A stretch of 36,845 nt of DNA from Hydrolagus affinis (Eukaryota), in assembly GCA_012026655.1 (NCBI GenBank), contig JAAILG010005517.1:1-36845 (forward strand), in the 5' to 3' direction. The notes beneath the pieces are model-generated. The model had not been told where the DNA came from. It was given only the letters and a program-made list of their open reading frames with translations, and searched no databases. Within the stretch, counting starts at the first letter, position 1; each line of letters opens with the position of its first letter. The translations under genes and the position numbers were made by a program. Below, in pieces: positions 8,801-31,538 of the stretch.

Positions 8801-11800
8801 AAGAACTCACCTGATATTACCCCATGTATTTCAACCTGGGGATGTCCCAAAATATGAAGGTGTCCAGCTTTTGTAAAGTACCTGGGTCTGTGAACGAAGT
8901 AAGAGGATGGTCGACCTTAAGCATGGTGAAACGTTTCGATCTTGGGACGAACGTAGAATGAGTGGAAAGTGGGAGCGAATCAGGGAATCATTTGTTTGCA
9001 TTGAGAAAAGGCAGAATGGATGTAAACTTGATCCCAATATTAAATGGATGGGGGGATGTGGGTTGGTGACGCTGCAGGGAGGGCGAGGTAGGCGAAGTTG
9101 ATCGTAAGTGAGATGTTGAGGTGGTGTGATGACTCATCGTTTGGTAAAATGGGGAAGTGGTACAGTGGATAAAATTACGGGTGAGTAACAGTGTCTTGAT
9201 CATAATCCACTGGAGGCTCACAGCTCATTTTCCCAACTTTATCTGGTTAGAACAGCAAGGAAAACACTCTACGGATTTCAAATCAAGCCTCGGGAAGTTC
9301 AGTCTCTCTGTGGACAGGATAAGTACAGGACTTTTATTTTATATCATATCCAACAAACATATCTGTCATTATTCGGTCCATCAGAACTGCACTGGAGCGT
9401 CAGCCTGGTCGTTGAGAACAAACCATCTGATCTGTGGCTTGAATACAGAAACATAATCCGAGACTCAGACACAGATCCAGATTGAAACACATCTCTGAGA
9501 GAACATTATTAACAGCTGTTGAAAACTCAACTGAGTGACAGTACGCTCTGCTTCCTCATCGTACATCTCAAAGAGAAACAGTCTCAGATGCTGCGTTTGG
9601 CGTCATTGTCAATACTGATGTTGACTGTCGCAAGAACGAACAGGTCGAGTGTTTGTGAAATTATCTTTCCTTTGTTTTGATTCCAGATCCATTCCAGAAA
9701 ACTACCATTTCCCTGAAGCCAGATTTCCGTGTGTTTGTGAAAGGGGAAAGCGCTGAGATCTCGTGTGCTGGAAATTATCCTGGCAGCACATTCTCTTTAT
9801 ACAGAGACGGCGTGTTTATCAAATCACAACCAGCTCCAGAGAATAACAACACGACTACATTCACCACATTGTCGATCAGAGCAGGAAATTACTGGTGCAG
9901 ATATATCAAACAGATAGAAAGCCAAGTGTATACATCACCAGACAGCGAGCCAGTGGGAAACACTGTCATAGGTAAGTGCACTGTACAACCTCACCCAATA
10001 TCATTTTTGTCTTTATACATAATCTCGATAAGTAGAATACCTCCTTTTGATATCACGCTATTGTTTAATGCACCTCAATGTGCCAAATACAACACTTTAT
10101 TAATTGTATATTTTGTGGGCTAAACTTCAATCGAATACAAGCAGGGTTCCTACTTAATTTGAGGTAAACACGACCACGCTGAATGAGAACTGAAACCTAA
10201 GGTTTCTTCCGACCGTCGAATTTAACCCGTGCCCTCTCATTTGGGAGCGCTCGCAATGTTAGTAGCTGTTTAATTTGCCTCGATCAGGAAAGACAATTTC
10301 TTCAAATCGGTGCCTCGCATAAGGAAAATAACAATAGTAATCATAAAGATGTCAGAAACACGTCGAAAACCATTTCCAAAATGTAGAGATTATCATTCCG
10401 TGCAAACACAAGAGTGAATTTAGCGACAAAAACTTCCTACACACAGTGGTGATATCAATTCCAATTAAATTCTAATTGTCAATACACAATGCGTTTCAAC
10501 TGGGAGGTGGAACAAGCCGTGTAACTGACAGGCTTGGCAATCCACCTGCAATGGAACAAAGTGGCGGGAAAGAAGACATAAAGCATGGTCAAAATGCGAG
10601 GTCATCAAATTGGATCTGGAAAGAGGGAAAGCATTGAGCGTTTCAGGGATGCAGATACATAGAGAAGAGGCAGAATGGCTGAAATCCTGATCCCGATGTT
10701 ACTGGCGTTGGAGGTCAAGTTGATGATGGTGGGAGGAGTGGGTGGTGAAGCAGATTTTGTTGTGTGGGCTGGGAATGTGAATTTGATTGTGTGGAGGGAG
10801 GAGAGAAGGTGAGCGGAATCTGATAATTGCGGTGAGGTATAGCGAGCGGAGGCTGAATTTTTTTTTGGAAGGTTGGGTGTGAGCAGGTTATAAAGCTGCT
10901 GCTTGAGGATGCCACATATGTAGCTTCTGGAGATACTGTTGAAAGAATAGAAGGTGAGAACTACCATCTTGATCATGAAACAGTGTATTCTGATAGCACA
11001 AGTTTCCAACTGTCTGGTGATTGGATATTCAGGGCAGCTATAAAAAGACGATAGCGTGAGATTTGGAGTCAGACTTATAACCAATCCGAAAGAGAAAGTT
11101 ATTAAGAACTGCTGATCAACTGCGTTAATAACAGTTTACAGTTGTGCCATGATCTAAAATTCAACTAAACAATCTCATGAAGTTTTTCACAGATCATAGC
11201 ACATAATTGTGAGAATACCTCTCGTGGGTTTTATTTTGATATCCACTTGAAAAACCCTCTATTTCCGTGAACCAATTCTCTGGTGTGTTTGTAAAAGGAG
11301 AAAGCGCTGAGATCAATCAATCCGTCNNNNNNNNNNNNNNNNNNNNNNNNNNNNNNNNNNNNNNNNNNNNNNNNNNNNNNNNNNNNNNNNNNNNNNNNNN
11401 NNNNNNNNNNNNNNNNNNNNNNNNNNNNNNNNNNNNNNNNNNNNNNNNNNNNNNNNNNNNNNNNNNNNNNNNNNNNNNNNNNNNNNNNNNNNNNNNNNNN
11501 CCAACCAATCAAACAATCAAACAATCAACCAACCAATCAAGCAAGCAAGCAATTAAAACTTACATTTATATAGCGCCTTTCACGTCGAGAGGACGTCCCA
11601 AGGCGCTGATCCATTGTTCTGGGTATCATCCTGACAGCAAATTCTCTTTATGGTATTTTTCGGCAGAAAAAATCAAAAACTGATATACTGGGTGCTTGCA
11701 CCGTACGATTTACGATAAATGAGATCACACCAGGATTTTACATCTGTATATATTCCCAAAACTTATCCGGACGATATTTCGCATCACCACGGAGTGAAGC

Positions 11801-14800
11801 AGTGCAAATCTCTGTACAAAGTAAGAGCGTGAGTTTGGATACTCCCACCAATCCTTAAAATGTCACATAACAACAATCACTTTTGTGACCAGTTACAGAC
11901 GGACAATTTTACTATTACTATTTACATTTGATAGAACCGGAGACGTCTTAAATGGCTTTACAGAACATATTATAGAGTAAATTGATTGCATATGCTGTGT
12001 GTGAAAGACCAATCGAATTAAAACCCAGTTTCTACTCATTTCGAGGTTACAGAAGTTGGTGAAGTCAGCAAATTTGCCAAATGTTTCTTCCCACCCAGAA
12101 ATCAAATGCATGCACTCACACCTGCTTTTGGGCGCGGATAACAAAATTCCTATCAACTTTGGCTTCGATCAAGAAACACAAAATTTCTAAAACAATGCCT
12201 CACAGAATAGTAATTAAAATAAACCAAATAAACCTTGACGGCAGGTGTACAAGACATCTCAAGGATTGAAAGTGCAGTCACTGTTATTTTATGGCAACCA
12301 CAACGTCCGATTTACACAACCCAATTTCCCACAAACATTGCTGACATAATCTGCAATACAACAGTAATTGCCATTACACAGTGCCTTTCAAATTGGGAAA
12401 TGCTAGGACGTGTTAATGTCCAGGCTAGCCACCCTTGTCGTGGGGTCCGAGTAGCGGATGAAGGGAAGCAGGGGGAGATTTTATCGAGACGAATAAGGCC
12501 TGATCTAGGGATGGGGGTGTTTGTGAGTTGTGATAATGACTCAAAGCAATCGATCTCAGAGAGAAACTTTGTAGAGATTACTGGGGATGATAACAGTACA
12601 TGGATCTGCTCATCTTAAATCAGAATCTCACAGCTGTCACTGGGGTTATTGTCGATCCTGGTGTTCAATGTCGTGCGCAGATTAGAGGGAGCGTTTGTCA
12701 TGTTTGTTTAAATGTTGCTTTATTTCCAGATCCTCCACGGAAAGCCACTATTAAACTGCAGCCAGATTTTCGGGTGTTTGTGAGAGGCGAATCTCCTGAA
12801 ATCTCGTGCTATGGGAACTATCGTGGCAGCAAATTCTCGTTATACAGAGACGGCGTGACGATCAAATCAAAAACTGCTCTAGGATATTATTACAGTGCAA
12901 TATTTGAACCATTCGTGATCATGACAGGAAGTTATTGGTGTATTTATACCAAAGCAATGGACGGGCGAGACCTCAAGTCACCAGAAAGCGAGCGAGTGAA
13001 AATCGCTGTGTGGGGTAAGAGCGAGAGGGTGGACTCTCACCAATCTGCAACAACTCATAAAATAACCTGTTTCTCTTCCGACCAGTTACAGGCAGCCAAT
13101 AAAATTAATACTTCCTTTGATACCATAATGTTAGACGACCACAATTGTTGTAGATAAAGTATTGTAAATAGTTTTGATTCCTCATTTTGTCATCAAACGC
13201 CATTCGCCTAATGACTGTTTTCCGACTTGTTGTTGGTTATACAAACGGCGGTGTGGGGTGTTAGAGTCAGGGAAGCTGGATAAGGTTTCTCCTCAGCCGT
13301 AAATTTGAATATATTACTCTTAGTTGAAAGGCGAGGGCTCACAAAGAGGAGAAATTGGATTTTTTCTTCGATTACGAAAATATAATTACTTCACAACAAT
13401 GTCAAAATAACAGCTACTTTAAAACATAACAGTGATAATGGTAGCATTAATGTCCAAATCATGTCTGAAACCCTTTCGAAGTGCAGCCTGTTATTTCACG
13501 CAAAGCACAACATCCAATTTTCTCACAGCAATATCCAACAAACTGTAAGATGTAAAGTGAATTTCAGTACTCGGTGACAATACATAGGACCTTTTAGTTG
13601 GGGATGTGCCAAGTAGTTCTAGTTTGAGTCTCCATTTGGGGTGAGGTCCGGGGAACGATGATGCTAATTCCTACAGTGCATTTGGTCGTTTTTGAGAGGG
13701 GCGTTCAACGAGGCGCGAGGGAGTGAGTCAGTGGGTGTCTGTTGTGCAGTTCCAGAGAAAACTGGCGTAATGTCAATTGAATTTTATTCTTCTTACTTGC
13801 CAGTCAAGAGCTTGCGTTAAAGAGAACTGGAATGTTTGTTTAGATTAAGCAAGATAATCGCTTTAATTGTCTCGTACAATAATCCCACTAATTGTAGTGT
13901 CAGAATCACGGTTGAAACCCCTTTGAAGTGCAGCCTATTATTTCATGGCAAGCACATCATCCTATTGACTCACAGCAGCAACAAGAACTTCGATTCAAAA
14001 AGCATTAAAAGAGTGCCCAGCAAACAATGGTAAGGTGAATTGCAATTCAATAATAGCTGATATTAGGCAGGAAATTTGAGCGCCGGAATGTGTTGAATAG
14101 TCCAAGTTTGACTCTCTAGCTGTGGTGGGATCCGAAGGAAAGGAATACCCAAAAGTGCAGAGCATGGGGACATTTTTGAGAGGGATCTTCAACGGGGGAA
14201 GAGTGGGCCGATCAGGGTGCGTCTGGGATGCTGATCGAAAGAAAACTGGGAAACTGGCTGAAAGGCCGACTTTCATGTTGGTGACCGTTGGAAATTGAGA
14301 TTCTGTGTGGAGAAATATGAAACGATTCACATTGGAACAAAAAAAGACATGGAAAAGATAAAGGAATTGGAAATCGTGATTAGCAACATATTGGAGCACC
14401 AACAGCAATTCTCTTTGACATTAAGTAAAGCAAGCCAAATGATCTTATGTATCAAAAGAATAATATCTATCAATGAATCGATCATTCAATCAAAACTTAC
14501 ATTTATGTAGCGCCTTTCATGTTGAGAGGACTTCCCAAGTCGTTGTGCAGTCAGGTACGCACATGATAAGGGGAGCACGATGACGGAGATTTGTATATTT
14601 TTGAGCGAAACGCAGCAGCCAAACTGCGCAGAGTAGTGTCCCACAAACAGTCATGGAGGTGTGATTAGGGCAGAAAAGTGAAAAATAGAGTAAGGCTATT
14701 ATTTGTTGGTGAATCTAACATCGAATTGATGCACAGCAATGTACATAAAATGTATATATTTCTCTTGGGGATTTTCATCACATGTAACATCCCAGGCTTG

Positions 14801-17019
14801 ACACACGATCTGGTGATTGAAACCGAGCTGGAGAAGGTGTGTACTGAGCTGGGGATGGGGGATGATCTTGGGTGAACGCCTAAAATGTGGTTGGATGCTG
14901 AGCTGGTCGTGGGGATGGAGTTGTTGCTGGGGCTTGAGCTGGGAGGTGAACTGAAGTGGGATTGAGAGCTGAACTAGATATAGGAACTGAGATTTGGGTG
15001 TGTTTCAGGTGATTGCAGGATCCGATCGAAGGGTGCGGTCTGCACTTGGGATGGGGCTTAGACGGTGTTGTGTCTTAGCTGATTCCAGGCAATGAGTCCC
15101 AGCATCTCACTCCACGCTGTGTGCAGCAGCTGCTCCTGAATTTCCGGTTTAATTCGCTGCCGGACATCTTATAGAGAAACATCTGCACATCATCAGAGAG
15201 GTTCAGGCTCTAGGTCCTGCCCTAGTGTTACTCTTGTCTCGCTATCCAACCTCAACAGCCGTGTCCAAGCCGTCGCGCCACCTCTCTCTGTGTAAAGAAC
15301 AACTCGCTGCGGTCAGCCACTCAATCCCCCCACTCCCTCCACTCCAGTCTGTGATATAAGCGAATGGTCACTTTTACTCTGATCGGAACCGCGTCTGTGG
15401 CACAGAGTGAGTGTTTGTGATATTAACGTTATTGTGTTTCCATTTCAGATCCTCTCCAGAAACCCAACATTTCCCTAAAAAGTGATTCCCCTGGGATCAT
15501 CGGAGGAGATAACGCTGAGATCTCGTGTTCTGGGAATTATCCTGGCAGCACATTCTCTTTCTGCAGAGACGGCGTTTTTGTCACATCACAACAAGCTCCA
15601 GAGAATAACAAATCTGCTGCAATCATCTCGACGAACATCACTGCAGGAAATTACTGGTGCAAATATACTGCACAGATAGGCGGCCGGGAGTTCACATCAC
15701 CAGAGAGTGATCGAGTGGGAAATTATGTGCGGGGTGGGAGATGAGTAAACTCTCACACAATAGCATGTTTGACTTTTATACCTGCTCCTCTTGCCATTGT
15801 TTACGCCAGTCGATCATATTTGCTTGTTGTATTCTGGTGTCAGCAGGAGTGTTTGTCCCGGACAGAAACATATCCATTCGGTAAAACAGTTTAGATACCC
15901 TACTCCCAAATGATAGTGACACAGCAATAATTGTGTCTTTATCTCCCCTGCCACTCTTTTCTACACTGTCCCTCCCACCCACTACCTGGTCTCTTCTCCC
16001 AACTCCTAGACTTGTCTCTACTGTCATCTCCGCCAAATGCCTATCTCGCTCTCCCCAATACACCAATGCTGCCCTCCCTTCTCGCCTTTCTCCCAGCCTC
16101 CCCGTTTTCAACAAATCTACCTTACCCGCTTCAATTATTTCATATGCCCCGCCTCCCCCTATTAACTATTCTCTTACCATACCCCACTATCTTCTCCCTC
16201 TCACGCACTCCTCCCTCTCCCACCATTTAGCCCTCTCCTCTCGATCCACCCTGCCTCTTCACGCTCTCTCCCCATCTTTACCTCTTCTTCAGTCCGCCTC
16301 CCCGATTTTCTCCCTCTCACTATACTCAAACTTCTCTAGAAGCTACTCTCTCTCTACTCTCTCGCATTCTCCGCCATATTCATCCGGCCGCTCCCAACTC
16401 TACCCTCTCCGCCTCACAGTTCTCTGTACACACTACCTCCTCTCGCCTCCCCGTCTCTCCCTTATACGCACCACTAACTGGCTGCATCCTCTTTCGCTCC
16501 ACCTCCACCACTCACTCCAACTTACCGCCCACTATCTCTCAGTTTTTCAAGCCCATGTTCCACTATCTTCTCTTTGGGAAGTATTTCCGACGTCAAAGGC
16601 GCACTGAAATAAAATGATGTTGTCGATGTTTCCGTGCTATGCCTTCTAAACAACGTCAAATCCATTTCACTGCACAATGGAGTATTCAGATGTGTCGCTA
16701 TGAAACTTGATTGAATATATTTAAACACGCTGATGGGTTGGGACGCCGTTCGGCGAGGAGTGCGGTATACAAATCGAAGTTGTTAGTTTTCCATTTTGTT
16801 GGACACCCAGCTGACAAGTGTAGTCATGAATAATTGACTAATCATGTCTATCTCACAGGTTCCTGGAATAGGATGGAAATTATCAACAGTGTCCGGATCA
16901 GCCTGGCCATCGTAGTGTTGCTGGCTAGTATTCTGGTGCTGGTGGTCGAATGCCGACCAATGAAACCAGACAAGAGTCAAGAAACGGTTACTGAAGAATC
17001 GCGCCAACCTCTCCACTGA
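5047..17019 (+). CDS. LRC-type (LILR/GP6/FCAR/NCR1/CHIR-like) activating Ig-superfamily receptor gene; multi-exon; possibly a null allele or recent pseudogene in this assembly
   Basis: Exons: 5047-5071, 6161-6196, 9687-9971, [dead 11241-11820], 12730-13014, 15449-15733, 16859-17019. All junctions are phase 1 with AG/GT ends. Skipping the dead exon gives 1077 nt (359 codons), with one in-frame TAG at codon 15. The Ig domains have the C-x-G-x-Y-x-G-S-x-F-x-L-Y-R-D-G ... G-x-Y-W-C ... S-P-x-S-E-x-V pattern and the TM has an N-terminal Arg. Confidence 0.85.
5510..5720 (+). mobile_element. CR1 LINE fragment in intron 1
   Basis: ORF 5476-5742: QRDLGFRVH...QVQQATRKVNGML...EVLLQLFSSLVRPHLEFFVQ. Confidence 0.85.
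5802..6005. repeat. Compound microsatellite (TG)n / (GGTGTG)n / (CGTG)n / (CGCGTG)n
   Basis: Directly visible, mostly alternating purine-pyrimidine. It produces several low-complexity ORFs in the track. Confidence 0.95.
6161..6196 (+). CDS. Signal peptide exon 2: 36-nt mini-exon with in-frame TAG (6178-6180)
   Basis: ttcttatgcag | TG ATG TTC CTG GAG AGA TAG CCT GTG GAT TCT GAA G | GTTAGT. Phase 1 at both ends; all three frames contain a stop. Confidence 0.7.
6650..6845 (-). mobile_element. CR1 LINE RT fragment
   Basis: ORF 6532-6843: ILKFTDDTKLGKIVN...LQED...WQMNVNVEICEVMHFGRRN. Confidence 0.85.
7561..7660. other. Assembly gap (100 N; true size probably unknown)
   Basis: Run of exactly 100 N, lying between the mini-exon and the first Ig exon. 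Confidence 1.
8700..8765 (+). mobile_element. L2/SINE 3' tail ending in (ATTG)n
   Basis: gagcctagggacatcctctggacatgaaaggcgctatatcaatg...attgattgattg. Confidence 0.7.
9687..9971 (+). CDS. Ig C2 domain exon D1 (285 nt, open)
   Basis: ttccag | (D)PFQKTTISLKPDFRVFVKGESAEISCAGNYPGSTFSLYRDGVFIKSQPAPENNNTTTFTTLSIRAGNYWCRYIKQIESQVYTSPDSEPVGNTVI | GTAAGT. Confidence 0.92.
10600..11050 (-). mobile_element. Decayed L2 LINE ORF2 fragment (between endonuclease and RT)
   Basis: ORF 10605-11084 resembles the L2 linker region (..SARYTS..HLLSSL..PAHTTK..). The similarity is weak. Confidence 0.45.
11241..11820 (+). pseudogene. Ig C2 domain pseudo-exon D2 (disrupted)
   Basis: PLEKPSISVNQFSGVFVKGESAEI (11241-11314), then the insertion, then HCSGYHPDSKFSLWYFSAEKIK, a frameshift, and TDILGACTVRFTINEITPGFYICIYSQNLSGRYFASPRSEAVQISVQ | GTAAGA. 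The acceptor reads ttttgat with no AG. Confidence 0.85.
11315..11607 (-). mobile_element. 5'-truncated L2/SINE tail with (CAAT/CAAC/CAAG)n microsatellite, inserted in D2; includes N-gap 11327-11500
   Basis: aaaacttacatttatatagcgcctttcacgtcgagaggacgtcccaaggcgct at about 11555-11607. GATC flanks both sides (11311-11314 and 11608-11611). Confidence 0.8.
12730..13014 (+). CDS. Ig C2 domain exon D3 (285 nt, open)
   Basis: tttccag | (D)PPRKATIKLQPDFRVFVRGESPEISCYGNYRGSKFSLYRDGVTIKSKTALGYYYSAIFEPFVIMTGSYWCIYTKAMDGRDLKSPESERVKIAVW | GTAAGA. Confidence 0.92.
14495..14665 (-). mobile_element. SINE fragment (Deu-like core + L2 tail)
   Basis: Reverse complement of ctgtttgtgggacactactctgcgcagtttggctgctgcgttt ... 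tgaaaggcgctacataaatgtaag. Confidence 0.7.
15449..15733 (+). CDS. Ig C2 domain exon D4 (285 nt, open; absent from the ORF track because it has no early start codon)
   Basis: catttcag | (D)PLQKPNISLKSDSPGIIGGDNAEISCSGNYPGSTFSFCRDGVFVTSQQAPENNKSAAIISTNITAGNYWCKYTAQIGGREFTSPESDRVGNYVR | GTGGGA (weak donor). Confidence 0.9.
15930..16625 (+). mobile_element. Decayed L2 3' end with long pyrimidine-rich tract and L2-like tail
   Basis: CT-rich tract at about 16130-16570, ending in gacgtcaaaggcgcactgaaataaaatgatgttg, which resembles the L2 tail. Confidence 0.5.
16859..17019 (+). CDS. Stalk/transmembrane/short cytoplasmic exon with TM arginine
   Basis: tctcacag | (G)SWNRMEIINSVRISLAIVVLLASILVLVVECRPMKPDKSQETVTEESRQPLH*. 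The Arg codon is at 16894-16896 and the tail has no Tyr. A candidate AATAAA lies at 17443-17448. Confidence 0.88.
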
Positions 17020-17479
17020 TCTCCTCTCAAACATCAGAATCCAGCCCGTCTCCATTTTATCCTCTATGTCAGTCCATGGCATCTTTCTCTTACTCTTGCT
17101 ATAACTTCCCGCCTTTGCCTTTGCTCGCACGCTTTTATCCACTCATTTCCAAATTCTCTGTCTGTCTCCTGTGACGTGTGATGTGGATTTGACCGCTTGA
17201 AGGCTGAGCGGCTACATGCACCAGAAAATTGCAAGTACAGTAATAACTGTCACGTTTTATTTTGCAGCGTTCGCTTCAGTAAAATGTTTCAAATCACTTT
17301 ATTAATGTTGACGGGAAAGTAGATGTTCTTTTAGGAAGCGATGGTAACATATATTTGTAACTATTTTTTAGAAATGAACATTTCTAAATGTTTAATGTTG
17401 CTTTGGTGTGTATTTTCCATGTAACAAATATGAACTATCACAAATAAATTAGTTCATAAATCTGTAAACCTTTGTGATG

Positions 17480-17720
17480 AAAATATTTGGGCGGTACGGA
17501 GTTTCCTTACTCCACACAGCTAATAATAAACCGTCCCCATAACCCCACAGTAATAAAATTGGTCATTTAAATCCACGACTGTTTGTGGGGACGCTGCTCT
17601 GCGTAATTCGGTGCCTCGATTCGCCCACAAAATATACAGGTAATTTACTTGACAGCATATTCTGCGAAGCGCTTTGAGACTTCGAATAAGATTTGAAAAG
17701 CAACGTGTCAAATGCAAGAA
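17480..17720 (+). mobile_element. SINE (headless), Deu-like core + L2 tail
   Basis: Paralogous to 18380-18620 (gtttccttactccacac...aatccacgactg...cacaaaatatacagg...gaagcgc.ttgagac). Confidence 0.75.
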
Positions 17721-18309
17721 TATTTTTATTATGAAACAGACAGTTATTTCGCCATATAACGGTTTCTCTGATCTCACGTTTGGCATCGAGGTAGTTTTGA
17801 AGAGTTTAAGGTTCCAAAGATTGATTTAAATAAATATCTATATTTATTTTCTGTGCTGTTTGCGAGGATAAAGAATGTAATACGACATGACTTGCATGAA
17901 AAATGTACGAAAACAAGCAAATGTTTTGGTTGTTGATAAGACATGACCTGTGATGTGGAGTTGGGGTTGGAGGGATATGAAAACTAGCTGTGGTCCCCTA
18001 CTGCTCTTGTTTTTACTGATATTGTTCCAGTAGTGAAGGAATTATTTTGATGAGATGGTCTTCGTACTGCATTGTGGTAAAGTAATTCATTGTAAAGGTT
18101 AGAGGGTTGAGCATGAAGATCAGGCAAATGCTGTAGTGTGTTTTGCTCACTCAATGGCATCAAGCTGAACATTCTCCAGAGGGAAGAAGAAGGCAATAGA
18201 TACAGATTAGCAACGCTACCTTTCTTTAAATGCTCGTGATTAAATAAAAGTTACAATCATACAGTACCACCAGCCTATGTCAATTTGATTATCTCTGAGT
18301 TCGAACTCT

Positions 18310-18620
18310 GAAAGCTGTAGCTCCTGCCGCTCAGTGGTTAGAGCACTCGCCTTATACGCATGATACATGCGTGCAGACCTTGTGCAAGTTTCCTTACTCC
18401 ACACACACACACGCCAAATAATAAACCGTCGAAAATAAAACAATAATAATGTAATACAATTAGTCATTTCAATCCACGACTGGTGTTGGGACACTGCGGT
18501 GCGGAAATGGCTTGCCAAATTTTGACCACAAAATATACAGGCAATTCAGTTTACAATTTATTCTCTGAAGCGCCTTGAGACGTCGTTAATGTGTGAAATG
18601 CTCCAATAGCAATGCAAGGA
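18310..18620 (+). mobile_element. tRNA-headed SINE, near full length
   Basis: Head gctcagtggttagagcactcgcc (A-box-like), body as at 17480-17720, tail gaagcgccttgagacgt. Confidence 0.8.
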
Positions 18621-20319
18621 TTATCACTATTATTACAATAGGTTTGTTTTATTCACGTAATTGGCAGTGATTTAATTTACAGTTCATATCATATTCGAAC
18701 ATTTGCAGTCAACAGCAGTGCAGACCTATCCGTCAGCCAGCCGGGCTGGTCTGTCATCAGCATTCTATAGAGTCGCATCTAAATGTCTGTGTCAGGACAA
18801 GATAACAACAACAAATCGCAAGTATACAGTAACTTTTGTTCTTTGGATACAACGTCCCAAGTGACTGCACAGTGTGGGGTTTGTATCTGAGCTGGTGATT
18901 GCTCTTGGTGGGGCTCTTGGTGCTCTTGTGTGTGTTGGGGAGGGGGAGGTGGGGGGACTAGTGATGATATTTCAAATAGGAACGTTTTGAGTTAGGCCTG
19001 AAAGTCAGAATGTGACATGGGAATCCAATGTGAATCTAGGATGGAGTTACTGAATTTGGGAGAGAATAGGGTGATAGCCCATTTGTCAATTCTGGTTTTG
19101 GAAGTGCCGGGGACATGAAACATACTTAAAGGGGGGACGAGATTAAGAGTCATCGTTATATTAATAATAACAACATTATTCTTTCAATTTGGTTTGGAGC
19201 TTCTCACGTCGTCTTGGCATCCCATGGCTCCTCACAGCATATACACTAACTTGTATATGAACTGCGACAACCAGTTTCACACAGCAGTGTCCCACACACA
19301 GTCCTGAATTAACATGACCAATGTAATGTTGGATATCTTAGGCATTGTTTTCAGTGGTGTGCGGATAGGAAGCTTTATACTCTCTGCAATTGGTTAGTTA
19401 GAATGCATTTTTTCCATTGAGAGGGAGAGCACATTCCATTCGAATAGATGAGATATCCCATGTTTAGGTGAATTGCACAGAATTAGCAGGGATTTGTTTG
19501 GATTCTCTAAATATTTTGAGGTCCAATAGAATACACAGTTGAGCACAATGTAAAACAGTTGATAGTTACATACACTGCGTGTAAATATTGAAGATTGAGA
19601 TGGCTAGCAAGAAGGCGAGAATGGGGAGAAGCTGGTTGTGTTGTGTGAGCATGCTGAGCGGATAAATGTAGGGGTGGCTGTACCTACGATGCTCTCCCCA
19701 TTCATTCTGACCTAGCGTCAGACTTCACAACTGTGTCGAGCTCTGACGCACTACTCATTTGCAGCAGTGCTGTCTAAGTATATGCTGTTGTTGCTGTAAT
19801 TCAAAATACACAGGAGCAATTCAAACACAGAGCGCGCTGATGAGAATGACAAATATGTGCTGACAGCAGGGATAAAATTAGGTATTTAAAATTCCGCAGA
19901 GCACCTTAATACCAGTTTCCTGACTCACCCAATAACTGAAAGCAATAAGGCACTGAAAGGGGGTGGGTGGTAGGGGTGGGGCGGATGGGTTGTGGGGGTG
20001 TGGAGAGAGAATGCAATATTCCTCAAGTCCACGAAGACAGGCATTGACATGAAGGTCTGTAGTACAACCATATGTACAACAGTTGGCGGTGTTGCACTGT
20101 ATCCACATCTTGTGTTCACAAAAAAATAACTGCCCAGTGGCTGAATGCGGTAATACAGCTCCGATTGCACTCAATTCAGATATTATTCATATTTCAAGAA
20201 CAAAGCGCAAACAGTATGGGTTTGTTCATCACCGATTAAGTAAGATCATGTTTTGAGTTACTCCTCAGTGTTCTATTGTAAAGGTTCAATACTTCTTCAT
20301 TAGTTATCACAACACCAAC

Positions 20320-21130
20320 AACAACTTAAACTTCTAAAGCGCCTTACACGTAGGGAGGACGTCCCAAGGCGCTGCACAGGAGGCGTGTGACCCGAGCTGG
20401 GAGAGGAGTGTTCGGGAAGGGGTGAAGCACGTAAGGGAGGTCAAAAAATTCGGGTGGAACAAAAAGGCACCGTCGAAGAGGAAAGTCTTCAAACCAGCCT
20501 TGAAAGAGAAAAGGGAGGAAACAAAACGGAGCGATTGGGGGATGGAATTCCACAGGATGGGAGCGGAGAAACTGAAGGCCCGGCCTCCGATGGTGGGGCG
20601 GTTCGGGCGGGGGGCTTGGAGAAGGCCAATTCCTGCTGAATGATGGGTCCGGTTGGGCTTATATGGGGAGAGTCAATTGGTTAAGTAGGGCGGGGCAAGG
20701 CCGTGTAAGGCCTTGAAGGTGAGGACGAGGATCTTGAACTCGATCCTCTGGAGGATGGGGAGCCAGTGGAGACGGGCGAGGGTGGGAGGTATTTGGTCGC
20801 GGAGGCGTGTGCGGGATAATACATGGTCTGCAGAGTTTTGGATGATCTGCAGCCTGTGAATGGAGGAGCTGGGTAGGCCGACGAGGAGATAGTTTCCGTA
20901 GTCCAGCCGTGAGGTGATGTAAGTGAGCACGAGTGTTTCTGCAGCGTGGGGGGTGAGATAGTTGCGGAGCCTGGCAATGTTGTGTAGGTGGAAATAAGCG
21001 GTGCCGGTCAAGGCACGGATGTGGGGACGGAAGGAGAGTTTATGGTCGAACGTAATGCCGAGGTTCCTGACTGGCTTTGTGAGGTGGAGAGTACAGCCTT
21101 GGATGTTGAATTTGCCAATCTCTGGTCTGA
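20320..21130 (-). mobile_element. L2 LINE, 5'-truncated, about 0.8 kb, relatively young
   Basis: Open 153-aa ORF 20673-21134 (VRNLGITFD..LSFRPHI...SRLDYGN..LVGLP...RLHWLP..QRIEFKILVLTFKALHGLAPPYL). After a frameshift it continues GGRAFSFSAP.LWNSIP...LKTFLF, followed by the tail at about 20320-20375. Confidence 0.93.
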
Positions 21131-21510
21131 TCACGTGTGTATGTAATTAATAATTTCCCAATTGAATCCCAGGACATTACCTGTATTCATTTTAACAAAA
21201 TTGATGAATTGGTCACTTTCATCCACGAACCTTTGTGGGAATCTCCTGTGTTCAATTCTCTGACAGATTTCACCACAAATGTACGGTTAATTCACTTTAT
21301 AGTAAATTACGTGATCTTCCCACAAGATATGTGGAGTACGTGGAAACAGTTATATGAAATGCAATGATAATTATTATTGCTTTGCGACTCAGGTCAGTTT
21401 AATACTATCAAAATTTAGTGAGACTTAAAGCCGAGAACGGATTTACCTTTTTCTACATCTCCCCTGATATTTTGTGTAGTTATTGTGTGTTCAATTAACG
21501 ATAACAATTC

Positions 21511-21543
21511 TGCAGTACTGCATTACTACCGCCAGATGGTGGC
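21511..21543 (+). promoter_or_regulatory. Predicted CTCF site 1 (upstream motif + core)
   Basis: TGCAGTACT-6 bp-CTA-CCGCCAGATGGTGGC. One core mismatch to CCRSYAGRKGGCR. Confidence 0.6.
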
Positions 21544-21724
21544 GATGTTCAGTGTAACTGCCCACAAGTGAAATCCTTGTTCTCCTTGAGCTGAGAAGAG
21601 AAAGTTTGACCATTGTCAGAATCCTTCATAGTTTCCAACCAAACCCCGCCTCACACTCCCAAACCACGTGCGACAGTCTCTATTCTGATTTCCGATAAAG
21701 ATATTTCAGGTGCACATTTATTTG

Positions 21725-21835
21725 TGGAGTACGGGATTGCACGGTTTTGGGGAGAGAACTAGTGAGTGGGATTGAATTGCTCTTTTCAAAAGGCGGCACC
21801 CACACAATGGACCGAATGGCCTCCTTTTTGTGTGC
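21725..21835 (+). mobile_element. CR1 3' UTR fragment
   Basis: gggagagaactagtgagtgggattga...atggaccgaatggcctcct, similar to 34340-34440. Confidence 0.65.
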
Positions 21836-21853
21836 AAATTAACGCTAATAATA

Positions 21854-21886
21854 TTCAGTACCACTTTACTACAGCGAGATGGCGGC
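21854..21886 (+). promoter_or_regulatory. Predicted CTCF site 2 (upstream motif + core)
   Basis: TTCAGTACC-6 bp-CTA-CAGCGAGATGGCGGC. Same spacing and orientation as site 1; two core mismatches. Confidence 0.5.
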
Positions 21887-22512
21887 GATGCACTGTGTAA
21901 TTTCTCACTAAGTTCTGAGTAAATTCCCTTGTCCTCATTTAGCAGAGAAGAACCCGTATGAGCAGAATTGTTCTGTAGGTGGGTAACACATTGTCAGAAT
22001 TTTTCCCAGTGGTTCCCACTGCTGATGACAACACAGCCCGGCCTGGCTCATCGGCAGGACTTTTGCAGAGCAGATCAGAACGAATCTTCGAATCTTCACG
22101 ATTTCTCCGTTGCCTTTGTCCAGCTATATATTGACCTCCATTCTATTGCCCTGCTTCCTTGGAATCAATCAAGGAGATGTCCTTTACTTTAATGGTTGGA
22201 ACGCTTGCCTGTTAGGAACATGTGAGTTACGTTTCGAGCTGGGAGGACCATTGTGTGTTTTCATCATCCACAAACATGCCTCTGTTATACCAGCTGTAAG
22301 TGTTAACCCTAATGATTGTCGATTGACGAATCAACGTAGCACAAGCCAAAATACAGGAAGTGACATTTCAGTAAAGCCATCACTCAGAATATAGTTATAA
22401 CCTGCACAGCTAAAAGCATTCGACAAATATTCATAAACGCTTGTCAGGATGATTGGATGATTTCCTGTTGCATTCCCCTGACAGATTTTGACTTGACTCA
22501 GCGAGGATAAGA

Positions 22513-22959
22513 ATGAAGCCTTGTTTCACTGCAATACATATTATTCTTAGTTTAATGATTCTGATAATCTGTAAGTAAAGCTCCAGTTTGGACAAACACA
22601 TTCTTGTTTTCCTATTAGCTAAATTTTTGTTGCAGCTTTTTTCCAAGTTTCTTTGCTGGAATGTCCATGACTGTTCCCCCAGGTTTGTTGGCTGAAAACG
22701 AAGTGACACAGAGACCACTGTCCATTACAAAGAATGAAAATGTAAATACATCTATAGAGTGCACCATCACTGCGTCAATCCCAATCTTTCAATGTTACAA
22801 ACAGCATGGAAACGGCTCCATCCAATTACTAGTGTTGGGATGAAGAGAGATGAAGCAGAAGGTGAGGATAAATAATGCTTTGACTGTTGGAAGAAATAGC
22901 ACTTTATCGATCCGAGACGTGCGAGTGTCTGACTCCGCCACTTACTTCTGTGCGGAGAG
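22513..22959 (+). pseudogene. TRAV: TCR alpha/delta V segment V1 (family A), pseudogene
   Basis: Leader 22513-22570 (MKPCFTAIHIILSLMILII | GTAAGT). V exon 22683-22959 reads ENEVTQRP...IECT...FQCYKQHGNGSIQLLVLG*REMKQKVRIN...STLSIRDVRVSDSATYFCAE. In-frame TGA at 22841-22843; the conserved Trp is replaced by Cys. Confidence 0.9.
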
Positions 22960-22998
22960 CACAGTGATGTGGGTATAACAAGGATCTGTAAAAAAAAA
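22960..22998 (+). other. 23-RSS of V1
   Basis: CACAGTG + 23 bp + AAAAAAAAA (degenerate nonamer). Confidence 0.8.
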
Positions 22999-23004
22999 AC
23001 GTGC

Positions 23005-23340
23005 TGGGGTTCCTGCAGCTCAATGGTTAGAGAACCTGCGTTGCAAACTAGAGATCATGAGCTGGAATCGCCGCAGAGTGAAACACTCAGCATTCTGCCT
23101 TACTCCACACACATCTATTTACATTGAAATGTGGAGGAACCCGGTTTGTGATCGATTGACCGAATCGCTTTCCTGGGTNNNNNNNNNNNNNNNNNNNNNN
23201 NNNNNNNNNNNNNNNNNNNNNNNNNNNNNNNNNNNNNNNNNNNNNNNNNNNNNNNNNNNNNNNNNNNNNNNNNNNNNNACACTTGTGGGACGCAGATGTG
23301 CGGAATCGGCTGCCGCATTTAGCAGCAAATAACAATTTAA
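23005..23340 (+). mobile_element. tRNA-headed SINE spanning N-gap 23179-23278
   Basis: cctgcagctcaatggttagag...ccttactccacac...[N]...ttgtgggacgc...aatcggctgccgcattt. Confidence 0.7.
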
Positions 23341-23572
23341 AAGTTTTGTATGAAATTACCTTTAACTCTTCTATATTCCTGAGAAACTACAATTATAGCC
23401 CTAATCCAGGTTTCCTTGATCGAGTGATCACGAGTGTCCCTGTGTAAGATGCAGTTGTACAAGACGCTTCACACCAAAACAGAATATGACCCAGGAGGAG
23501 GAGGAGGAGGAGGGTTGAGGTGGTGTCCAACTCACTTCTGTGGGAGGAGCTTTGCCTGTGACTGGCAGTGAC

Positions 23573-23716
23573 TGCGTGGGCGGGGCCCCTTGTGGGCGAG
23601 GCTATGTTTGGTCGGGGATCCGTGTGCGCGGGTCTCTGTGTGGGCGGGGCTGTGTGTGGGCAGGGCTCTTTGTGGGCGATTCTATGTGTGGGCGGGGCTC
23701 TGTGTGGGCGGAGCAT
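23573..23716. repeat. Minisatellite, 9 x 16 bp, consensus TGTGTGGGCGGGGCTC
   Basis: Units start at 23573, 23589, 23605, 23621, 23637, 23653, 23669, 23685 and 23701. Confidence 0.9.
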
Positions 23717-23786
23717 TGACAATGTGTGCGTGTTTCGAAGTGGGCGGGGCAGTGAGTGAGTGTCTCTGCATTTCATCCACATTCAC

Positions 23787-23794
23787 TATATAAA
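23787..23794 (+). promoter_or_regulatory. TATA box of V2
   Basis: TATATAAA(CAG), 42 bp upstream of the leader ATG at 23836. Confidence 0.6.
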
Positions 23795-23835
23795 CAGCCA
23801 CATGTTGGAGAGTTAATGTCAGACACAGGATTAAA

Positions 23836-24702
23836 ATGCTCCTGTGGGCGAAGTGTGCTGTGCTTACAGTATCTCTCAGCTTACTTTCTCGTATGTAACC
23901 TTCTTATACCTTTACCATTTTCCCATAATATCTGCTAAAGGCTTCAGTAGAGCAAAACTAATAACAATATTAATGATAATTGGGATTCTCTAACGTGTTT
24001 CTTCACAAATTTGAGACGTCTCAACGCACTCCACATTATAATGTAAAGCGAATTGACAATGTATTCTCTGGGTGCATCGTGAGAGTCAATTTCGCTCAAC
24101 AGTGCCCCCAAAATTTTTAACGGATTCAATGACGAAATTATTATTATTTTTATTGGTTTACATATATGAATGATTAGCTCCAGAATAACAATCCACGAAT
24201 TGACTAACATTTGGATTTCTATTTCCTAGTAGTCTCACAAAGCCATGCGGAGTAAAGAATTTTAGCTGAGGTATTGCACTGCTCAGGAATCGAATCTGGC
24301 TCTACTCTCTTATGTGGCTAGTTTTGTAACCATCGAGCAGCAGGATCCCTATGTAATTCAATCTTGATTCTCAAAAACCTTGTTGATTTCAATCACAGGA
24401 AGCAGCTTGCAGGAAATGGGGAAACAATCGATGACTGAAAGATCGATTCTAGAGGCACAAGATGTGAAATTGTCCTGCAGCTTCAAGAAAATCATTAATG
24501 CGTATGCTCTCTTCTGGTACAGACAAGCTTCCAGCCACGCTCCTGTGTATCTATTGCGGGGAACAGCGACTAACGTTCAAAGGAACCCCGACTTCCCAGC
24601 TCGATTTTCCTCCACTGTCAATAAATCGAGTGAAGATTTCGTACTGAGGATTGGCACAGTCCTGATCAGGGACATTCCTGTGTATTACTGTGCCATGGAG
24701 CC
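23836..24702 (+). CDS. TRAV: TCR alpha/delta V segment V2 (family B), open reading frame
   Basis: Leader 23836-23890 (MLLWAKCAVLTVSLSLLS | GTATGT). V exon 24399-24702 reads SSLQEMGKQ...VKLSCSF...LFWYRQ...PARFSS...DIPVYYCAME with no stops. Confidence 0.88.
24240..24350 (-). mobile_element. SINE head in the V2 leader intron
   Basis: Reverse complement reads gggatcctgctgctcgatggttac...gattcgattcctgagc...tctttactccgc. Confidence 0.55.
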
Positions 24703-24741
24703 CACACTGCTGCTGTGCTATGGGGGCTCTGTACAAAAACA
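24703..24741 (+). other. 23-RSS of V2
   Basis: CACACTG + 23 bp + ACAAAAACA. Confidence 0.92.
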
Positions 24742-24824
24742 TCAACTGGTTATTTAGCTGCTAAACGGCGAGGGGGCATCATTGCTTCAAGAAAAAATAA
24801 GCAGCGTTTATACATGTTTGAATA

Positions 24825-25140
24825 CAAGAATATAAGAATAAGAAGCAGGAATAGGCCATTCGACCACACGAGCCCGTTCCGCCATTCAAAGGGTTATAGC
24901 TGGTCTTCAAATCTTACTCCAGTTGCTACTACCTTATCCCCATGTCGCTGAATCCATGTATGTATTAATAAATCTACAAATTTCAGTCTCGAATATGCGC
25001 AAGCACTAAGCATCTACAGCTATTTTTCGTGGAAGTGGTCAAGTATTCCATAAATTCACTACCGTGTGAGTAAAGAAGAGTTTCCTCATCTCTGTGCGAA
25101 AATGCTGACCCCTAATCTTAAACCACTGACCCCCTAGTTA
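24825..25140 (-). mobile_element. CR1 LINE 3' fragment
   Basis: agaatataagaataagaagcaggaataggccattcg...ttcctcatctctg, paralogous to 2605-2900. Confidence 0.8.
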
Positions 25141-26074
25141 CCGCAGCAATAAATAGGAAACTTATTGTATTTGGATTGCTGAATCGCTTTTCTGGGCGTA
25201 ACAATTAGTTCAAAAATAATAAAAAAAATAAGAACAAAGGGGAATTTCATCCAATTATACTGTTTGTGGTAGACTGGTGTGAGCAAGTATCTTGCAGATT
25301 TCGCCCTCAAGATATATGGGAAACTCACTCTAGAATATATCCAGTGAAGCGCTTCGAGTCCCGAAGAAGACATGATACGGCAGAAAATCAGATGCACTTA
25401 TTCCGATTGTCACGATCTTTATCGAAAATTTAGTCTTTGTATGTGGATATTTCTACAGAGTCTCTTTCACTCAATGTTTCAGGAATCCTTTCTCTAATAC
25501 AGATGACAGATAGTCAGAAAAATGCTAATCTGTGTACACAGAGTTAAGGTTAATTTAACTTAAAGGTGAGTGTCGTTCATTGACGTAGTCAGTCTTGCTC
25601 TATTTACAGTGCATTTGCCTCTGAGTCAGATGATAGTGGGTTCAAACACTAATTCTTGAATTGGAACTCATAGCATTTAATGTAATCCCCCAAAAGTATT
25701 CCCAATAACGAGCATAATTATTTGGATATGCCTCTCGTCTGGTACGACATCATCAAACAACAACAACTTTGCGTTTATAGAGCGATTTTCATGTCGCGCA
25801 GGACGTCCCAAGGAGATACTTCAAACAGAGGCGGTTTCTGTCCATCATGTGGTTGGTAAACATCTAATGTCACTTTCACAGAAGAGAAGATGAAACAGAT
25901 AAAACTGTTCATTTAAATTTATTCGTCTCGGTTTCTGGGAAAATGTTGTGAACTGCAAAAAAATAAACATTTTTATTAAAAACAAAAAGTCCTAAATCAA
26001 TATTAGACCTAAAGTGACATTTCATTTAAACAGGACATTTCTGTTGATTCAAATGAATACCTTTATAACATGAA

Positions 26075-26162
26075 ACAAAACTACATTGGTACCGTTATTT
26101 TCACGTCAGGTGTTCTCCTGAGTTCTCCTGACGTGAAAGTAACGGTACCAATGTAGTTTTGT
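26075..26162. repeat. Near-perfect inverted repeat (36-bp arms, 1 mismatch, 16-bp loop)
   Basis: ACAAAACTACATTGGTACCGTTATTTTCACGTCAGG (26075-26110) pairs with CCTGACGTGAAAGTAACGGTACCAATGTAGTTTTGT (26127-26162). Confidence 0.95.
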
Positions 26163-26249
26163 CCCAATTTGCTGAACATTCTGGTATTTGGGCAAGAGCT
26201 GATGGTCACATTGGGGAGGAAGGAGGGCTGTGAGAACATTTTGGTTAAC

Positions 26250-26340
26250 AATGGTCCAGTCGAAGAGGAAGGTTTTGAGACGTGCTTTCAACGTGGCAAG
26301 TGGATGAGGCAAGGAGAGGAGGCAAGGGGAGGCGGAGTTA
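26250..26340 (-). mobile_element. L2 ORF2 C-terminal fragment
   Basis: Minus-strand LKARLKTFLFD, matching the L2 terminal motif also seen near 20480. Confidence 0.55.
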
Positions 26341-26531
26341 CTCTAAACACAATGGAAAGTGATAGGAGGATTTGTAAATGTCACCAACAATGAACACAGA
26401 CAAGGTAACGACGCATGTCTAATTATCGACTCCTCGAATGAACACATATTTATAATCGAGGCACTGACTTGTAGCTGATTGGTCGTTGCATTTCGAACAA
26501 TCGCTTAATCTTGAGTCGACGCCTGTTGAGA

Positions 26532-26990
26532 ATGATGCAGCATTTCACTGCAATATACGCTGTTATTAATTTCTTTGTATTATTTTTGTGTAAGTGCGTT
26601 ATGTGTTTGAAAAAAACAGCACTTTCACGTTCCACTGCTGATTATGTAGAAATTAGCTTTACCGATATCATTCGAATTTCATTCAAAGATTGTTCATTTC
26701 TATTCCCCAGGTGTCTTAGCTGAACGTGATGTGTCACAGAATCCTCAGGCGCTGACAGAGAATGCAAATGGAAATGTGTCTATGGAGTGCAGAACCACTG
26801 GATACGTCGAATACTTTCATTGGTACAAACAGTATGGAAATGGTTCCATCCAGTACTTGGTGATGGGAACCAGAGAGATGAAGGAAGGGCCGAGGATAAG
26901 TGCCTTGGCTGACACAAACGAGAAAAACAGCACACTATCAATCAAAGACGTGCGAGTGACAGACACCGCCATTTACTTCTGTGAAACAAG
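26532..26990 (+). CDS. TRAV: TCR alpha/delta V segment V3 (family A), open reading frame
   Basis: Leader 26532-26589 (MMQHFTAIYAVINFFVLFL | GTAAGT). V exon 26711-26990 reads VLAERDVSQNPQ...MECRTTGYVEYFHWYKQYGNGSIQYL...STLSIKDVRVTDTAIYFCET. Confidence 0.92.
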
Positions 26991-27029
26991 CACAGTGCTC
27001 CGTGTCTCAGAGGAGCCTGTACAAAAGCA
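26991..27029 (+). other. 23-RSS of V3
   Basis: CACAGTG + 23 bp + ACAAAAGCA. Confidence 0.93.
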
Positions 27030-28156
27030 GAATGAGGACCCAGTAGATATTTGTGTAAATAACTCATCTCGCAAACAAGTAGAGCTGGATTTCGATTCTT
27101 GGATATTGTGCGATTTTCCTTATTCCACATGCCTCTGCTAATAGTAGTAGTTTGTAGGTATCTGTTTCGCCGTTGATCGAGGGATCACTAACCTGAGGGT
27201 CATAATGCCTTTTAAAAAATACAAACGTTCACTTCAATTCACGACTGTTTGTAAGACGCTGATCTGCTGCAATTTGCCCAACATTTCAGTTAATTTCAGT
27301 TCACAGCAGAACTCTGAATAATGAATCAGGCAAAATTAAAATTACAAGGTTTATTATTACACTAATGCAGAGCATTATGTAGGAAACCGGCTGCTAGTCG
27401 ACTGGCCGATAGCCTTTCCTGGGTCAACACTCCAATAACAAAATGGATGACTTTCCATTACGTTTTGCTAGACAAGGCTGTGTGAATTTGGCTACCGTGT
27501 ATTTTATTCAGAAGATATATGAACGCTACCAATGGCAGTTCTTCTTGTGAAGAGATTAGAGATGTTTTGAAGATGCGACAAGATGCTACATCAAACACAA
27601 TAATATTTCTTGGCACTCCAATTTTGATTCTTACACTCGCAAGCATGAGACGTGTTCTTCACATGTTTACATTCTGGTTAGTAAAATACACAATGTCATT
27701 CAGCGAAACAAAACAAATTTTGGCGAATAATTATGCTAAAAGATAGTTGTGTTTTGTACACAAACGGCTGTAACCCAGAAGCCTGGAGAAGAAATGGGGC
27801 ACGAAGGAAAACTTCAGGTAACTAGGGCAGAGACATCAGAGAAATTGGTGATGTAACGTGTCTCCTGCCCATTGGCTCTGAACCCTCTCATTGACCTGTT
27901 TCAGCTCTTTACCATAGTGATGGAAGAGAACCAATGGGGGAGCGAGTTGGCAGAACTGAGTGAGTGATGCAAACTGGCAGTGACATAAGTGTTGTGAATA
28001 ACTTTCAGACCTGCTCATTCGCAGCCTGTGGCAAATTCTCCATGTCACATATTGTTCTGCCCTCCACACTGCAGCTAACTGCCTCCCAGCCAGCGGTTTG
28101 GAACTCCACCATCAACGCTACCTCAACACCACATGCCACTAAACACACATATCACA

Positions 28157-28992
28157 ATGTATATTTACCTGGCAGCAGGCATCGTAATCTTCGTTGGTAA
28201 GCCGCAAATTCATATCATATATTCATGCACATATTACCCAATGTGTATTTTTTCTTATTGCATGAATTATCCAATAAATTGCAGGGCTTGAAAAGCGGTA
28301 GCGTCCTGTAGCTCAGTGAGTAGGGAGGGAGAATCTCCAGGTAAGTTTACTTGCGCCACAAACAAGTCCATGTTTCAGTAAGCTTAAATAGGAACCCTAC
28401 TGTAGGTAAACTTACTGATCGCGTCTCTGAAGCATGTAATTTCAAAAAGTTAGTCGTATATAAATCACTCAATTAACTAGTTTTTTTTTTTGACTGATAT
28501 GCGCAATTGGTTCTGATGTTTTGCCCAGAAAATTTGCTTAATTAATATTTCGTGAAGCCATTTGAGGTGTCGCCGATACGGGCTACATCGCTGTATGGAA
28601 TGTAAGGATTACTAATATCAATATTGTTTTTATTATTATCATTCCTATTTATATTATTATTACTGATTTATTTAATTTCTAGGATTTTGTGATGGAGACG
28701 CTGTGACACAGCTCCAATCCAATGTGACAGCAGATCAAGGGGAAGATGCAATAATGCAGTGCAATTATACAGCAGCAATGGACACCAATATATATCTGTT
28801 CTGGTACCGTCACTGTCCCAACTCAGCTCCAGAATATATCCTAAGCACATCCGTCAGGAACAATCCACAATACACAGACTTTGCCAAAGGACATTTCTCA
28901 GCAACAGTGGATAAAGTGGGGAGAACCGTCCCATTAAATATATCCCAAGTGAGAGTCACAGACACGGCGGTGTATTAATGTGCACTGAGCCC
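28157..28992 (+). pseudogene. TRAV: TCR alpha/delta V segment V4 (family C), pseudogene by a single nonsense change
   Basis: Leader 28157-28196 (MYIYLAAGIVIFV | GTAAGC). V exon from 28683 reads FCDGDAVTQ...MQCNY...LFWYRH...TVPLNISQVRVTDTAVY*CALS. TAA at 28976-28978 replaces a Tyr codon. Confidence 0.92.
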
Positions 28993-29031
28993 CACAGAGA
29001 CACAGATCAACGTTACCGCCCTACAAAAACT
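28993..29031 (+). other. 23-RSS of V4
   Basis: CACAGAG + 23 bp + ACAAAAACT. Confidence 0.9.
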
Positions 29032-30668: not shown

Positions 30669-31538
30669 ATGACAGGTCAATGTCATTTACTGATAGCAAT
30701 CCTCACCATAGCCAGTAAGTAAGTGTGGACATGCCCAGTGCATGTGATTTGGTATTACAAGATGTGAAAAGCGCTATATCACATGCCCGTATCATTATTA
30801 TATAATATTCGGTAGTGTAGCAATTAGAGCACTCCAATGAAAAAGAAAATACCTCAGCGTAACTCACGGCAGGGCTAATTGTTGGACAATTTGCTCTACA
30901 CCAACACACGACTTTGTGAGTCTACCAGTAATTAGGAACTGTATTCAACTTCCAGCTCGAGTCTTCTCTCCAAAAATTATTGAAATACCAATATTTTGAG
31001 CGCTCACTCTCGAACTGTTTATTGAACACTGTTGTGCACAAATAGCTGTGAGGTTCGTCTGAAAAGGCGATTGGAGGCAATTCATTTGATATTATATTCA
31101 TTGGGTATTTTGTATATATTTTTGTAACGTCTCATTATTGTGAAAATTCGAGCACAAACACTCGATATTAGTTGGTATTATTCGAATTGCACATTAATCT
31201 TTGCCTTACCTACTGAAAAACAAGTTGTTTTTTTATTGCAGAAGTTATGGGGAAAGATGTAATATACCAATATCCTCCTGAGATAAGGGAGTTTGAAGGA
31301 AAAGACGTGAGAATAAACTGCAATTATTCCGCAATCTATGCTGCCTTCTGGTACAGGCAATATCCAGATGGAGGTCTTCAGTACTTGCTGAAGATTTATA
31401 ACTCGGGAAAGGTAGACAAAGCTCCTGATATTCCGTCCGCTTCACTGCCAAGCTGGACAAGGAGAATAATGTATTTAACTTGCAAATACTCAGGGCTGAT
31501 GTGGGTGACGGCGACATGTATTACTGTGCACTGGAGCC
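30669..31538 (+). pseudogene. TRAV: TCR alpha/delta V segment V5 (family D), frameshifted pseudogene
   Basis: Leader 30669-30714 (MTGQCHLLIAILTIA | GTAAGT). V exon 31242-31538 reads VMGKDVIYQYP...INCNYS...FWYRQYPDGGLQYLL...PDIP, then a 1-nt frameshift near 31433-31440, then RFTAKLDKENNVFNLQILRADVGDGDMYYCALE. Confidence 0.9.

Follow-up and report, generated by a model that had tools for sequence, protein, structure and literature searches.

A predicted activating FcR/LRC-superfamily receptor gene directly upstream of a TCR alpha/delta-type V array in the assembly of the chimaera Hydrolagus affinis: a juxtaposition that is probably lineage-specific

In mammals, the variable (V) segment side of TRA/TRD, the alpha/delta locus of the T-cell receptor (TCR), borders on olfactory receptor genes, which at 14q11.2 lie upstream of the first TRA/TRD V segment. 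Activating receptors of the LRC type (LILRA, PIR-A, OSCAR, GPVI, FcaRI, NKp46 and chicken CHIR-A) consist of tandem C2-type immunoglobulin (Ig) domains encoded on phase-1 exons, have an Asn-x-x-Arg motif near the outer end of the membrane helix followed by a short tail without a signalling motif, and are accompanied by paralogues bearing an immunoreceptor tyrosine-based inhibitory motif (ITIM). Classical activating FcRs have a transmembrane Asp rather than an Arg. In cartilaginous fish, TCR alpha/delta-type V segments lie near other immune Ig-superfamily genes in an antigen receptor complex (AgRC), in which part of the V domains stand between the TCR and the Ig type (Flajnik et al., 2025; PMC12227049). 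Here we describe a window, meaning the whole 36,845-nucleotide stretch at positions 1 to 36,845 of the forward strand of contig JAAILG010005517.1 (H. affinis, GenBank assembly GCA_012026655.1), in which a predicted receptor gene of the FcR/LRC superfamily is followed directly by an array of seven V segments (V1 to V7) of TCR alpha/delta type. Like the mammalian TRA/TRD border, the arrangement has an unrelated gene immediately upstream of the V segments, in a V-free region; it differs in that this gene encodes a receptor of the immune Ig superfamily and in that V1 is only a putative outer border. The likeness to the AgRC lies in the closeness of TCR alpha/delta-type V segments to another immune Ig-superfamily gene and in the intermediate TCR/Ig V domains, which fit the family formed here by V1, V3 and V6. 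In contrast, the AgRC paper names IgH, IgL, UrIg2 and PSMB5 but no FcR/LRC-like receptor, its text makes no mention of such a receptor beside TCR alpha/delta, and it covers elasmobranchs and not this chimaera piece.

The stop codon of the receptor (TGA, 17017-17019) and the ATG of the V1 leader (22513) are separated by 5.5 kb, and both lie on the + strand. The sequence-only reading of the window had given the same distance and orientation, and the exon, splice-site and ATG coordinates bear this out. The window as a whole contains four runs of N (1547-1725, 7561-7660, 11327-11500 and 23179-23278), all of them outside 11501-23178, the segment that spans both the receptor end and V1 and that had correctly been described as free of gaps. 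The adjacency of receptor and V array is real in the present assembly. It is a single adjacency (n of 1), for which a meaningful chance statistic is impossible, and a search of the available literature found no published report of it. We consider it fairly probable that this real adjacency is a lineage-specific juxtaposition, in which an activating receptor of a paired FcR/LRC-superfamily family came to stand just upstream of a TCR alpha/delta-type V array. The parts of the receptor gene are as follows.

9683-9967, + strand: Ig C2-type domain exon D1 (phase 1-1; Pfam Ig_3, 5e-5)
11243-11816, + strand: second Ig domain exon region, split by the N gap 11327-11500, the two sides out of register
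12723-13016, + strand: Ig domain exon D3 (phase 1-1)
15449-15733, + strand: Ig domain exon D4 (acceptor AG 15447-15448, donor GT 15734-15735, phase 1)
16859-17019, + strand: last coding exon, with stalk, transmembrane helix and tail (exon start after tctcacag, acceptor AG 16857-16858; phase 1; stop TGA)
17020-17460, + strand: probable 3' untranslated region (UTR) of the receptor (AATAAA at 17443; homology with the 3' flank of the paralogue P0176 up to about 17300)

The Ig exons are 45-57% identical to one another, and each has an AG acceptor and a GT donor, both in phase 1. D4 ends in phase 1 and joins in frame with exon 16859-17019, the translation of which is (G)SWNRMEIINSVRISLAIVVLLASILVLVVECRPMKPDKSQETVTEESRQPLH. 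This last exon carries an NxxR motif (NSVR) at the outer end of the transmembrane helix and a tail of 21 residues in which there is neither an ITIM nor an immunoreceptor tyrosine-based activation motif (ITAM), and similar transmembrane exons are present in two paralogue loci, L001 and L002, of the chimaera Callorhinchus milii. The end of the transcription unit probably lies close to 17460. Together, the exon structure and the membrane motif point to an independent gene encoding a receptor of activating type. An SRCR exon was sought in the window and none was found. At 11243-11816, the piece before the gap corresponds to strands A-B of an Ig domain, whereas the piece after it restarts at strand B and is preceded by unrelated sequence, an out-of-register pattern that may come from there being two exons or from a fault of the assembly. 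A candidate first leader exon lies at 5047-5075 (ATG 5047, MKLVFFLFG, donor gtgagt), 4.6 kb upstream of D1 and among LINE (long interspersed nuclear element) reverse-transcriptase fragments at 2909-4195, 5476-5742 and 6532-6843. The split signal peptide of these receptors has a second leader exon of 36 bp in the LRC family and of 21 bp in the FcR family.

A profile made from the three intact Ig domains retrieved 535 proteins. Against it, the C. milii domains scored 120-150 bits and all elasmobranch and other domains 20-46 bits. The window exons are 55-72% identical to the C. milii paralogues, 72% being the maximum among the retrieved proteins (in the sources searched, the genes of the window itself are thus unannotated), and the expansion of the receptor family would therefore be recent relative to the chimaera-shark split. 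All protein relatives with more than 50% identity come from C. milii; distant ones occur in sharks, rays and beyond, under automatic names that include IGSF1-like, A1BG-like, OSCAR-like and FCRL5, the last being that of the shark relatives. The C. milii family is a large paired one, since many members have ITIM-like tails (VTYATV/VxYATV, IIYANL, PVYATV) and in others, among them P0059/P0176 and the L002 gene, the transmembrane helix bears an Arg as it does in the window; an NVAR helix also occurs among the paralogues. Several of its members start with SRCR domains, and across the family, of which P0016, P0024, P0059/P0176 and P0165 (loci L001 and L004) are examples, SRCR domains often lie N-terminal to the FcR/LRC-like Ig domains. 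No paper describing a C. milii family of paired receptors with SRCR and FcR/LRC-like domains was found in the literature search.

When the window-only profile was compared with the PDB, the best match was FceRI-alpha (7e-5), followed by LILRB2 (0.012), PIR-B (0.017), LILRA2, NKp46 and OSCAR. The broader family profile placed FCRL5 at the top and also matched PIR-B, LILRB1/A6/B2/B3, FCRL4, FcgRII, FceRI-alpha and OSCAR, with about 14-23 bits per domain for the FcR/FCRL group and for the LRC group alike. Because FcR/FCRL and LRC proteins match about equally, the receptor is placed only in the FcR/LRC superfamily, to which, judging by its predicted domains, it belongs. The earlier designation as an innate LRC-type receptor is supported only in part. 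The tandem C2-type domains on phase-1 exons, the NxxR helix, the short tail and the ITIM-bearing paralogues are all features of LRC activating receptors, but the Ig domains are no nearer to LRC than to FcR/FCRL proteins, and no LRC framework gene syntenic with human 19q13.4 was found in the window. The C. milii paralogue loci, viewed with 10-kb flanks, likewise hold no such gene, their sole non-family neighbour being a guanylate-binding protein (GBP) gene that adjoins the paralogue cluster at 20458-27427 of locus L003. A further difference is that LRC receptors are without SRCR domains, whereas many members of the family of the window receptor carry them at the N-terminus. The FcR/FCRL family and the teleost LITRs are comparable in that FCRL5 leads for the family profile and FceRI-alpha for the window profile; in contrast to classical activating FcRs with their Asp, the window receptor has an Arg in the membrane. 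A 2014 survey (PMC4016189) reported no FcRL, FcR-gamma or C2-only LRC homologues in sharks, and this statement of absence is contradicted by the automatic annotations together with the window.

On the right-hand side of the window lie the seven V segments.

22513-22570, + strand: V1 leader exon (MKPCFTAIHIILSLMILII; donor gtaagt)
22683-22959, + strand: V1 V exon, pseudogene (in-frame TGA at 22841-22843 against ACC in V3; TGT (Cys) in place of the framework region 2 (FR2) Trp)
22960-22998, + strand: V1 recombination signal sequence (RSS; heptamer CACAGTG at 22960, 23-nt spacer, A9 nonamer at 22990-22998)
24380-24741, + strand: V2 V exon with 23-RSS (RSS with a 23-nt spacer; heptamer 24703), open frame, TCR-alpha-like
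26511-27029, + strand: V3 with leader and 23-RSS (heptamer 26991), open frame, the V exon part at 26710-26990
28676-29031, + strand: V4 with 23-RSS (heptamer 28993), pseudogene (the Tyr codon ahead of the second Cys replaced by TAA)
31226-31577, + strand: V5 with 23-RSS (heptamer 31539), pseudogene (frameshift)
33045-33410, + strand: V6 with 23-RSS (heptamer 33372), pseudogene (stop and frameshift, also a leader stop), the V part at 33099-33372
35876-36252, + strand: V7 V exon with 23-RSS (heptamer 36214), open frame, TCR-alpha-like

All seven are on the + strand at a spacing of 1.8-2.8 kb, and every one follows the plan of a leader, a V exon ending in YxC and a 23-RSS, with heptamer, 23-nt spacer and nonamer at the expected place. 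V2, V3 and V7 are open, and the remaining four (V1, V4, V5 and V6) are pseudogenes as assembled. The pseudogenes include V1, the direct neighbour of the receptor, a point that had been missed in the first reading. V1, V3 and V6 form one family, V4 is 57% identical to V7, and V7 is a member of a V family that is large in C. milii; the V relatives returned by word-index searches were C. milii entries only. The V types were assigned with half-domain queries against the PDB, in which antibodies far outnumber TCRs. Whole-domain search was dropped as a typing method after the PDB results for V7 were swamped by two-domain single-chain Fv (scFv) antibodies, and so was the ESM Atlas, in which the V types were indistinguishable. 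With the FR1-FR2 half as query, both V7 and V2 had TCR alpha chains in nearly all of their best PDB matches. In the V1/V3/V6 family, the N-terminal (FR1-FR2) half was most like the Ig kappa light-chain V domain (VL) and the C-terminal (FR3) half most like TCR alpha, and the family is a candidate for the 'intermediate' V types of cartilaginous fish.

These half-domain matches and the signal sequences support a TCR alpha/delta-type V array. What had been claimed on this point stands for V2 and V7, which are clearly TCR-alpha-like; all seven segments carry a 23-RSS, and the V1/V3/V6 family gives a mixed picture. Neither a V-like exon nor a convincing RSS was found in 1-22512, and, with no V segment in the 22.5 kb to the left, the array begins or is interrupted at V1. 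No J (joining) or C (constant) segment and no DAD1 was found in the window, which ends at 36845. The array is for this reason called TRA/TRD-type only and is not equated with the TRA/TRD locus or its edge, so that of the proposal that the array starts here as a locus edge, the V-free left side stands and the locus edge is putative.

The interval between the two genes contains, besides the probable receptor 3' UTR, the following repeats.

17500-17732, strand not given: interspersed repeat resembling a short interspersed nuclear element (SINE), with very high depth in all runs and many copies in C. milii locus L001
18377-18635, strand not given: another copy of the SINE-like repeat at 17500-17732 (repeat depth and C. 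milii copies)
20309-21134, - strand: LINE 3' end fragment, with an open reading frame (ORF) at 20673-21134 that has a LINE ORF2 tail

Further fragments of the SINE-like repeat also lie inside 17020-22512. The repeats of the interval recur many times in an unrelated C. milii locus, match a C. milii scaffold at 70-92%, and reach a read depth of 10^4-10^6 in public sequencing runs. A Pfam search of ten ORFs within or beside the interval gave no match of note, and SINE-like copies, the LINE 3' fragment and the likely receptor 3' UTR were the only content found in 17020-22512, in agreement with the earlier statement that no other gene was recognised there. In addition, no CTCF site was found between the receptor and V1, including 21500-21985, when the core consensus was searched for with one mismatch allowed. 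In the bin 21750-21943, depth is raised in a repeat-like manner in four of four public runs.

The repeats bear on whether the receptor and V contigs were wrongly joined at a repeat within 17500-21134. Such a misjoin would fit the high-copy repeats (depths of 10^4-10^6 in bins 17482-17675, 18258-18451 and 20198-21167), the four N gaps of the window and the short read contigs, which give no long-range support: at most 0.20 of the sampled words occur in the best public runs, whose contigs on 16900-22700 are 100-400 nt long. The elephant shark assembly, which would matter here if the window came from it, has been described as 'particularly poorly assembled' (PMC5002281). The four runs differ from the window by 1-5%, several differences being common to them, and at positions 16933, 16985, 16991 and others in the transmembrane exon the same differences are present in four of four; because of these shared differences, the runs would come from another individual or population, perhaps of another, closely related species. 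Even so, 11501-23178 contains no N, each repeat is shorter than 0.9 kb with unique sequence on both sides, and the independent runs recover the unique parts all along the interval at 95-99% identity. Every listed joint begins or ends in a high-depth repeat bin, and no contradicting joint was found outside the repeats. On this balance we regard a misjoin as quite improbable. A somewhat different doubt concerns the array itself, which could be an orphon or decaying cluster, that is, a displaced, pseudogene-rich copy of TCR V segments without link to J and C, in which case the receptor would not abut a working TRA/TRD. Four of the seven V segments, V1 included, have stops or frameshifts as assembled, J and C are absent from the window, and the V1 nonamer is degenerate, all of which would suit such a cluster. 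V2, V3 and V7, however, are open with good 23-RSSs, and the regular spacing and orientation are translocon-like. Moreover, working V arrays can hold pseudogene fractions comparable to the four of seven seen here, and we judge an orphon cluster unlikely.

The remaining alternative is an ancestral linkage, in which a primordial antigen-receptor complex included paired innate Ig receptors from the FcR/LRC lineage and the arrangement was kept in the chimaera and lost in bony vertebrates. The adjacency is tight (5.5 kb) and on the same strand, family relatives exist in sharks and rays, and cartilaginous fish keep other old linkages among IgH, IgL, TCR alpha/delta, PSMB5 and UrIg2 (PMC12227049), which would agree with such a history. 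The sequence-only reading had put forward ancestral linkage and lineage-specific relocation as alternatives, with the genes flanking TRA/TRD in relatives as the place to look. In C. milii (GCA_018977255.1), four paralogue loci were viewed with 10-kb flanks, the scaffolds being 690 kb, 132 kb, 1.5 Mb and 409 kb long, and none of the four had a V segment within 10 kb. The skate homologue, a 55-kb gene viewed with 10-kb flanks, also showed no V segment and no neighbouring gene. These results do not bear out the ancestral linkage and favour the lineage-specific placement, as does the fact that the adjacent gene stems from a recent expansion with close copies seen only in C. milii; the AgRC paper, too, is silent on such genes. 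We therefore hold the ancestral linkage to be very unlikely, and still more doubtful is the wider proposition that the FcR/LRC-like paired family has a conserved place in the antigen receptor complex of cartilaginous fish and that the window preserves a junction between non-rearranging paired Ig receptors and rearranging TCR/Ig genes from the first jawed vertebrates. Several points nevertheless weigh against the lineage-specific juxtaposition that we prefer. It is drawn from only one window; the paralogue flanks cover 10 kb, and linkage could exist over distances of 50 kb to 1 Mb; the scaffolds with the paralogues, being unplaced, might all come from a single region close to the TCR locus; and the elasmobranch flanks come from one skate locus, the catshark homologue being a gene that spans 108 kb.

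Under the lineage-specific juxtaposition, the present place of the receptor gene is best accounted for if members of a fast-evolving multigene family were duplicated and spread into a region rich in repeats and immune genes. As in LILRA, OSCAR, GPVI and FcaRI, the membrane arginine would pair with an ITAM-bearing adaptor and lead to activation of the cell, and the ITIM-bearing paralogues would, to go by their motifs, oppose this signalling. The V segments would be joined by RAG to J or D-J segments (D, diversity) that the orientation of the V segments leads one to expect downstream, to the right. If J and C indeed lie to the right, the receptor, being upstream of V1, is on the retained side and would be kept after deletional V-to-J joining. 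Conversely, should further V segments lie to the left of the receptor, rearrangements that use them would remove the receptor gene from the T cells concerned.

Were the linkage conserved, the origin of the FcR/LRC-lineage paired receptors would be connected with the chromosomal region in which the rearranging receptors arose, and antigen-receptor-complex and proto-MHC models would be extended. As the evidence stands, the adjacency is a small curiosity and says nothing about ancestry. Even as a local arrangement, it marks a stop or interruption of the TCR V array in a chimaera, and the relatives of the receptor indicate that cartilaginous fish have a sizeable family of FcR/LRC-like paired receptors, which had been reported absent (PMC4016189).

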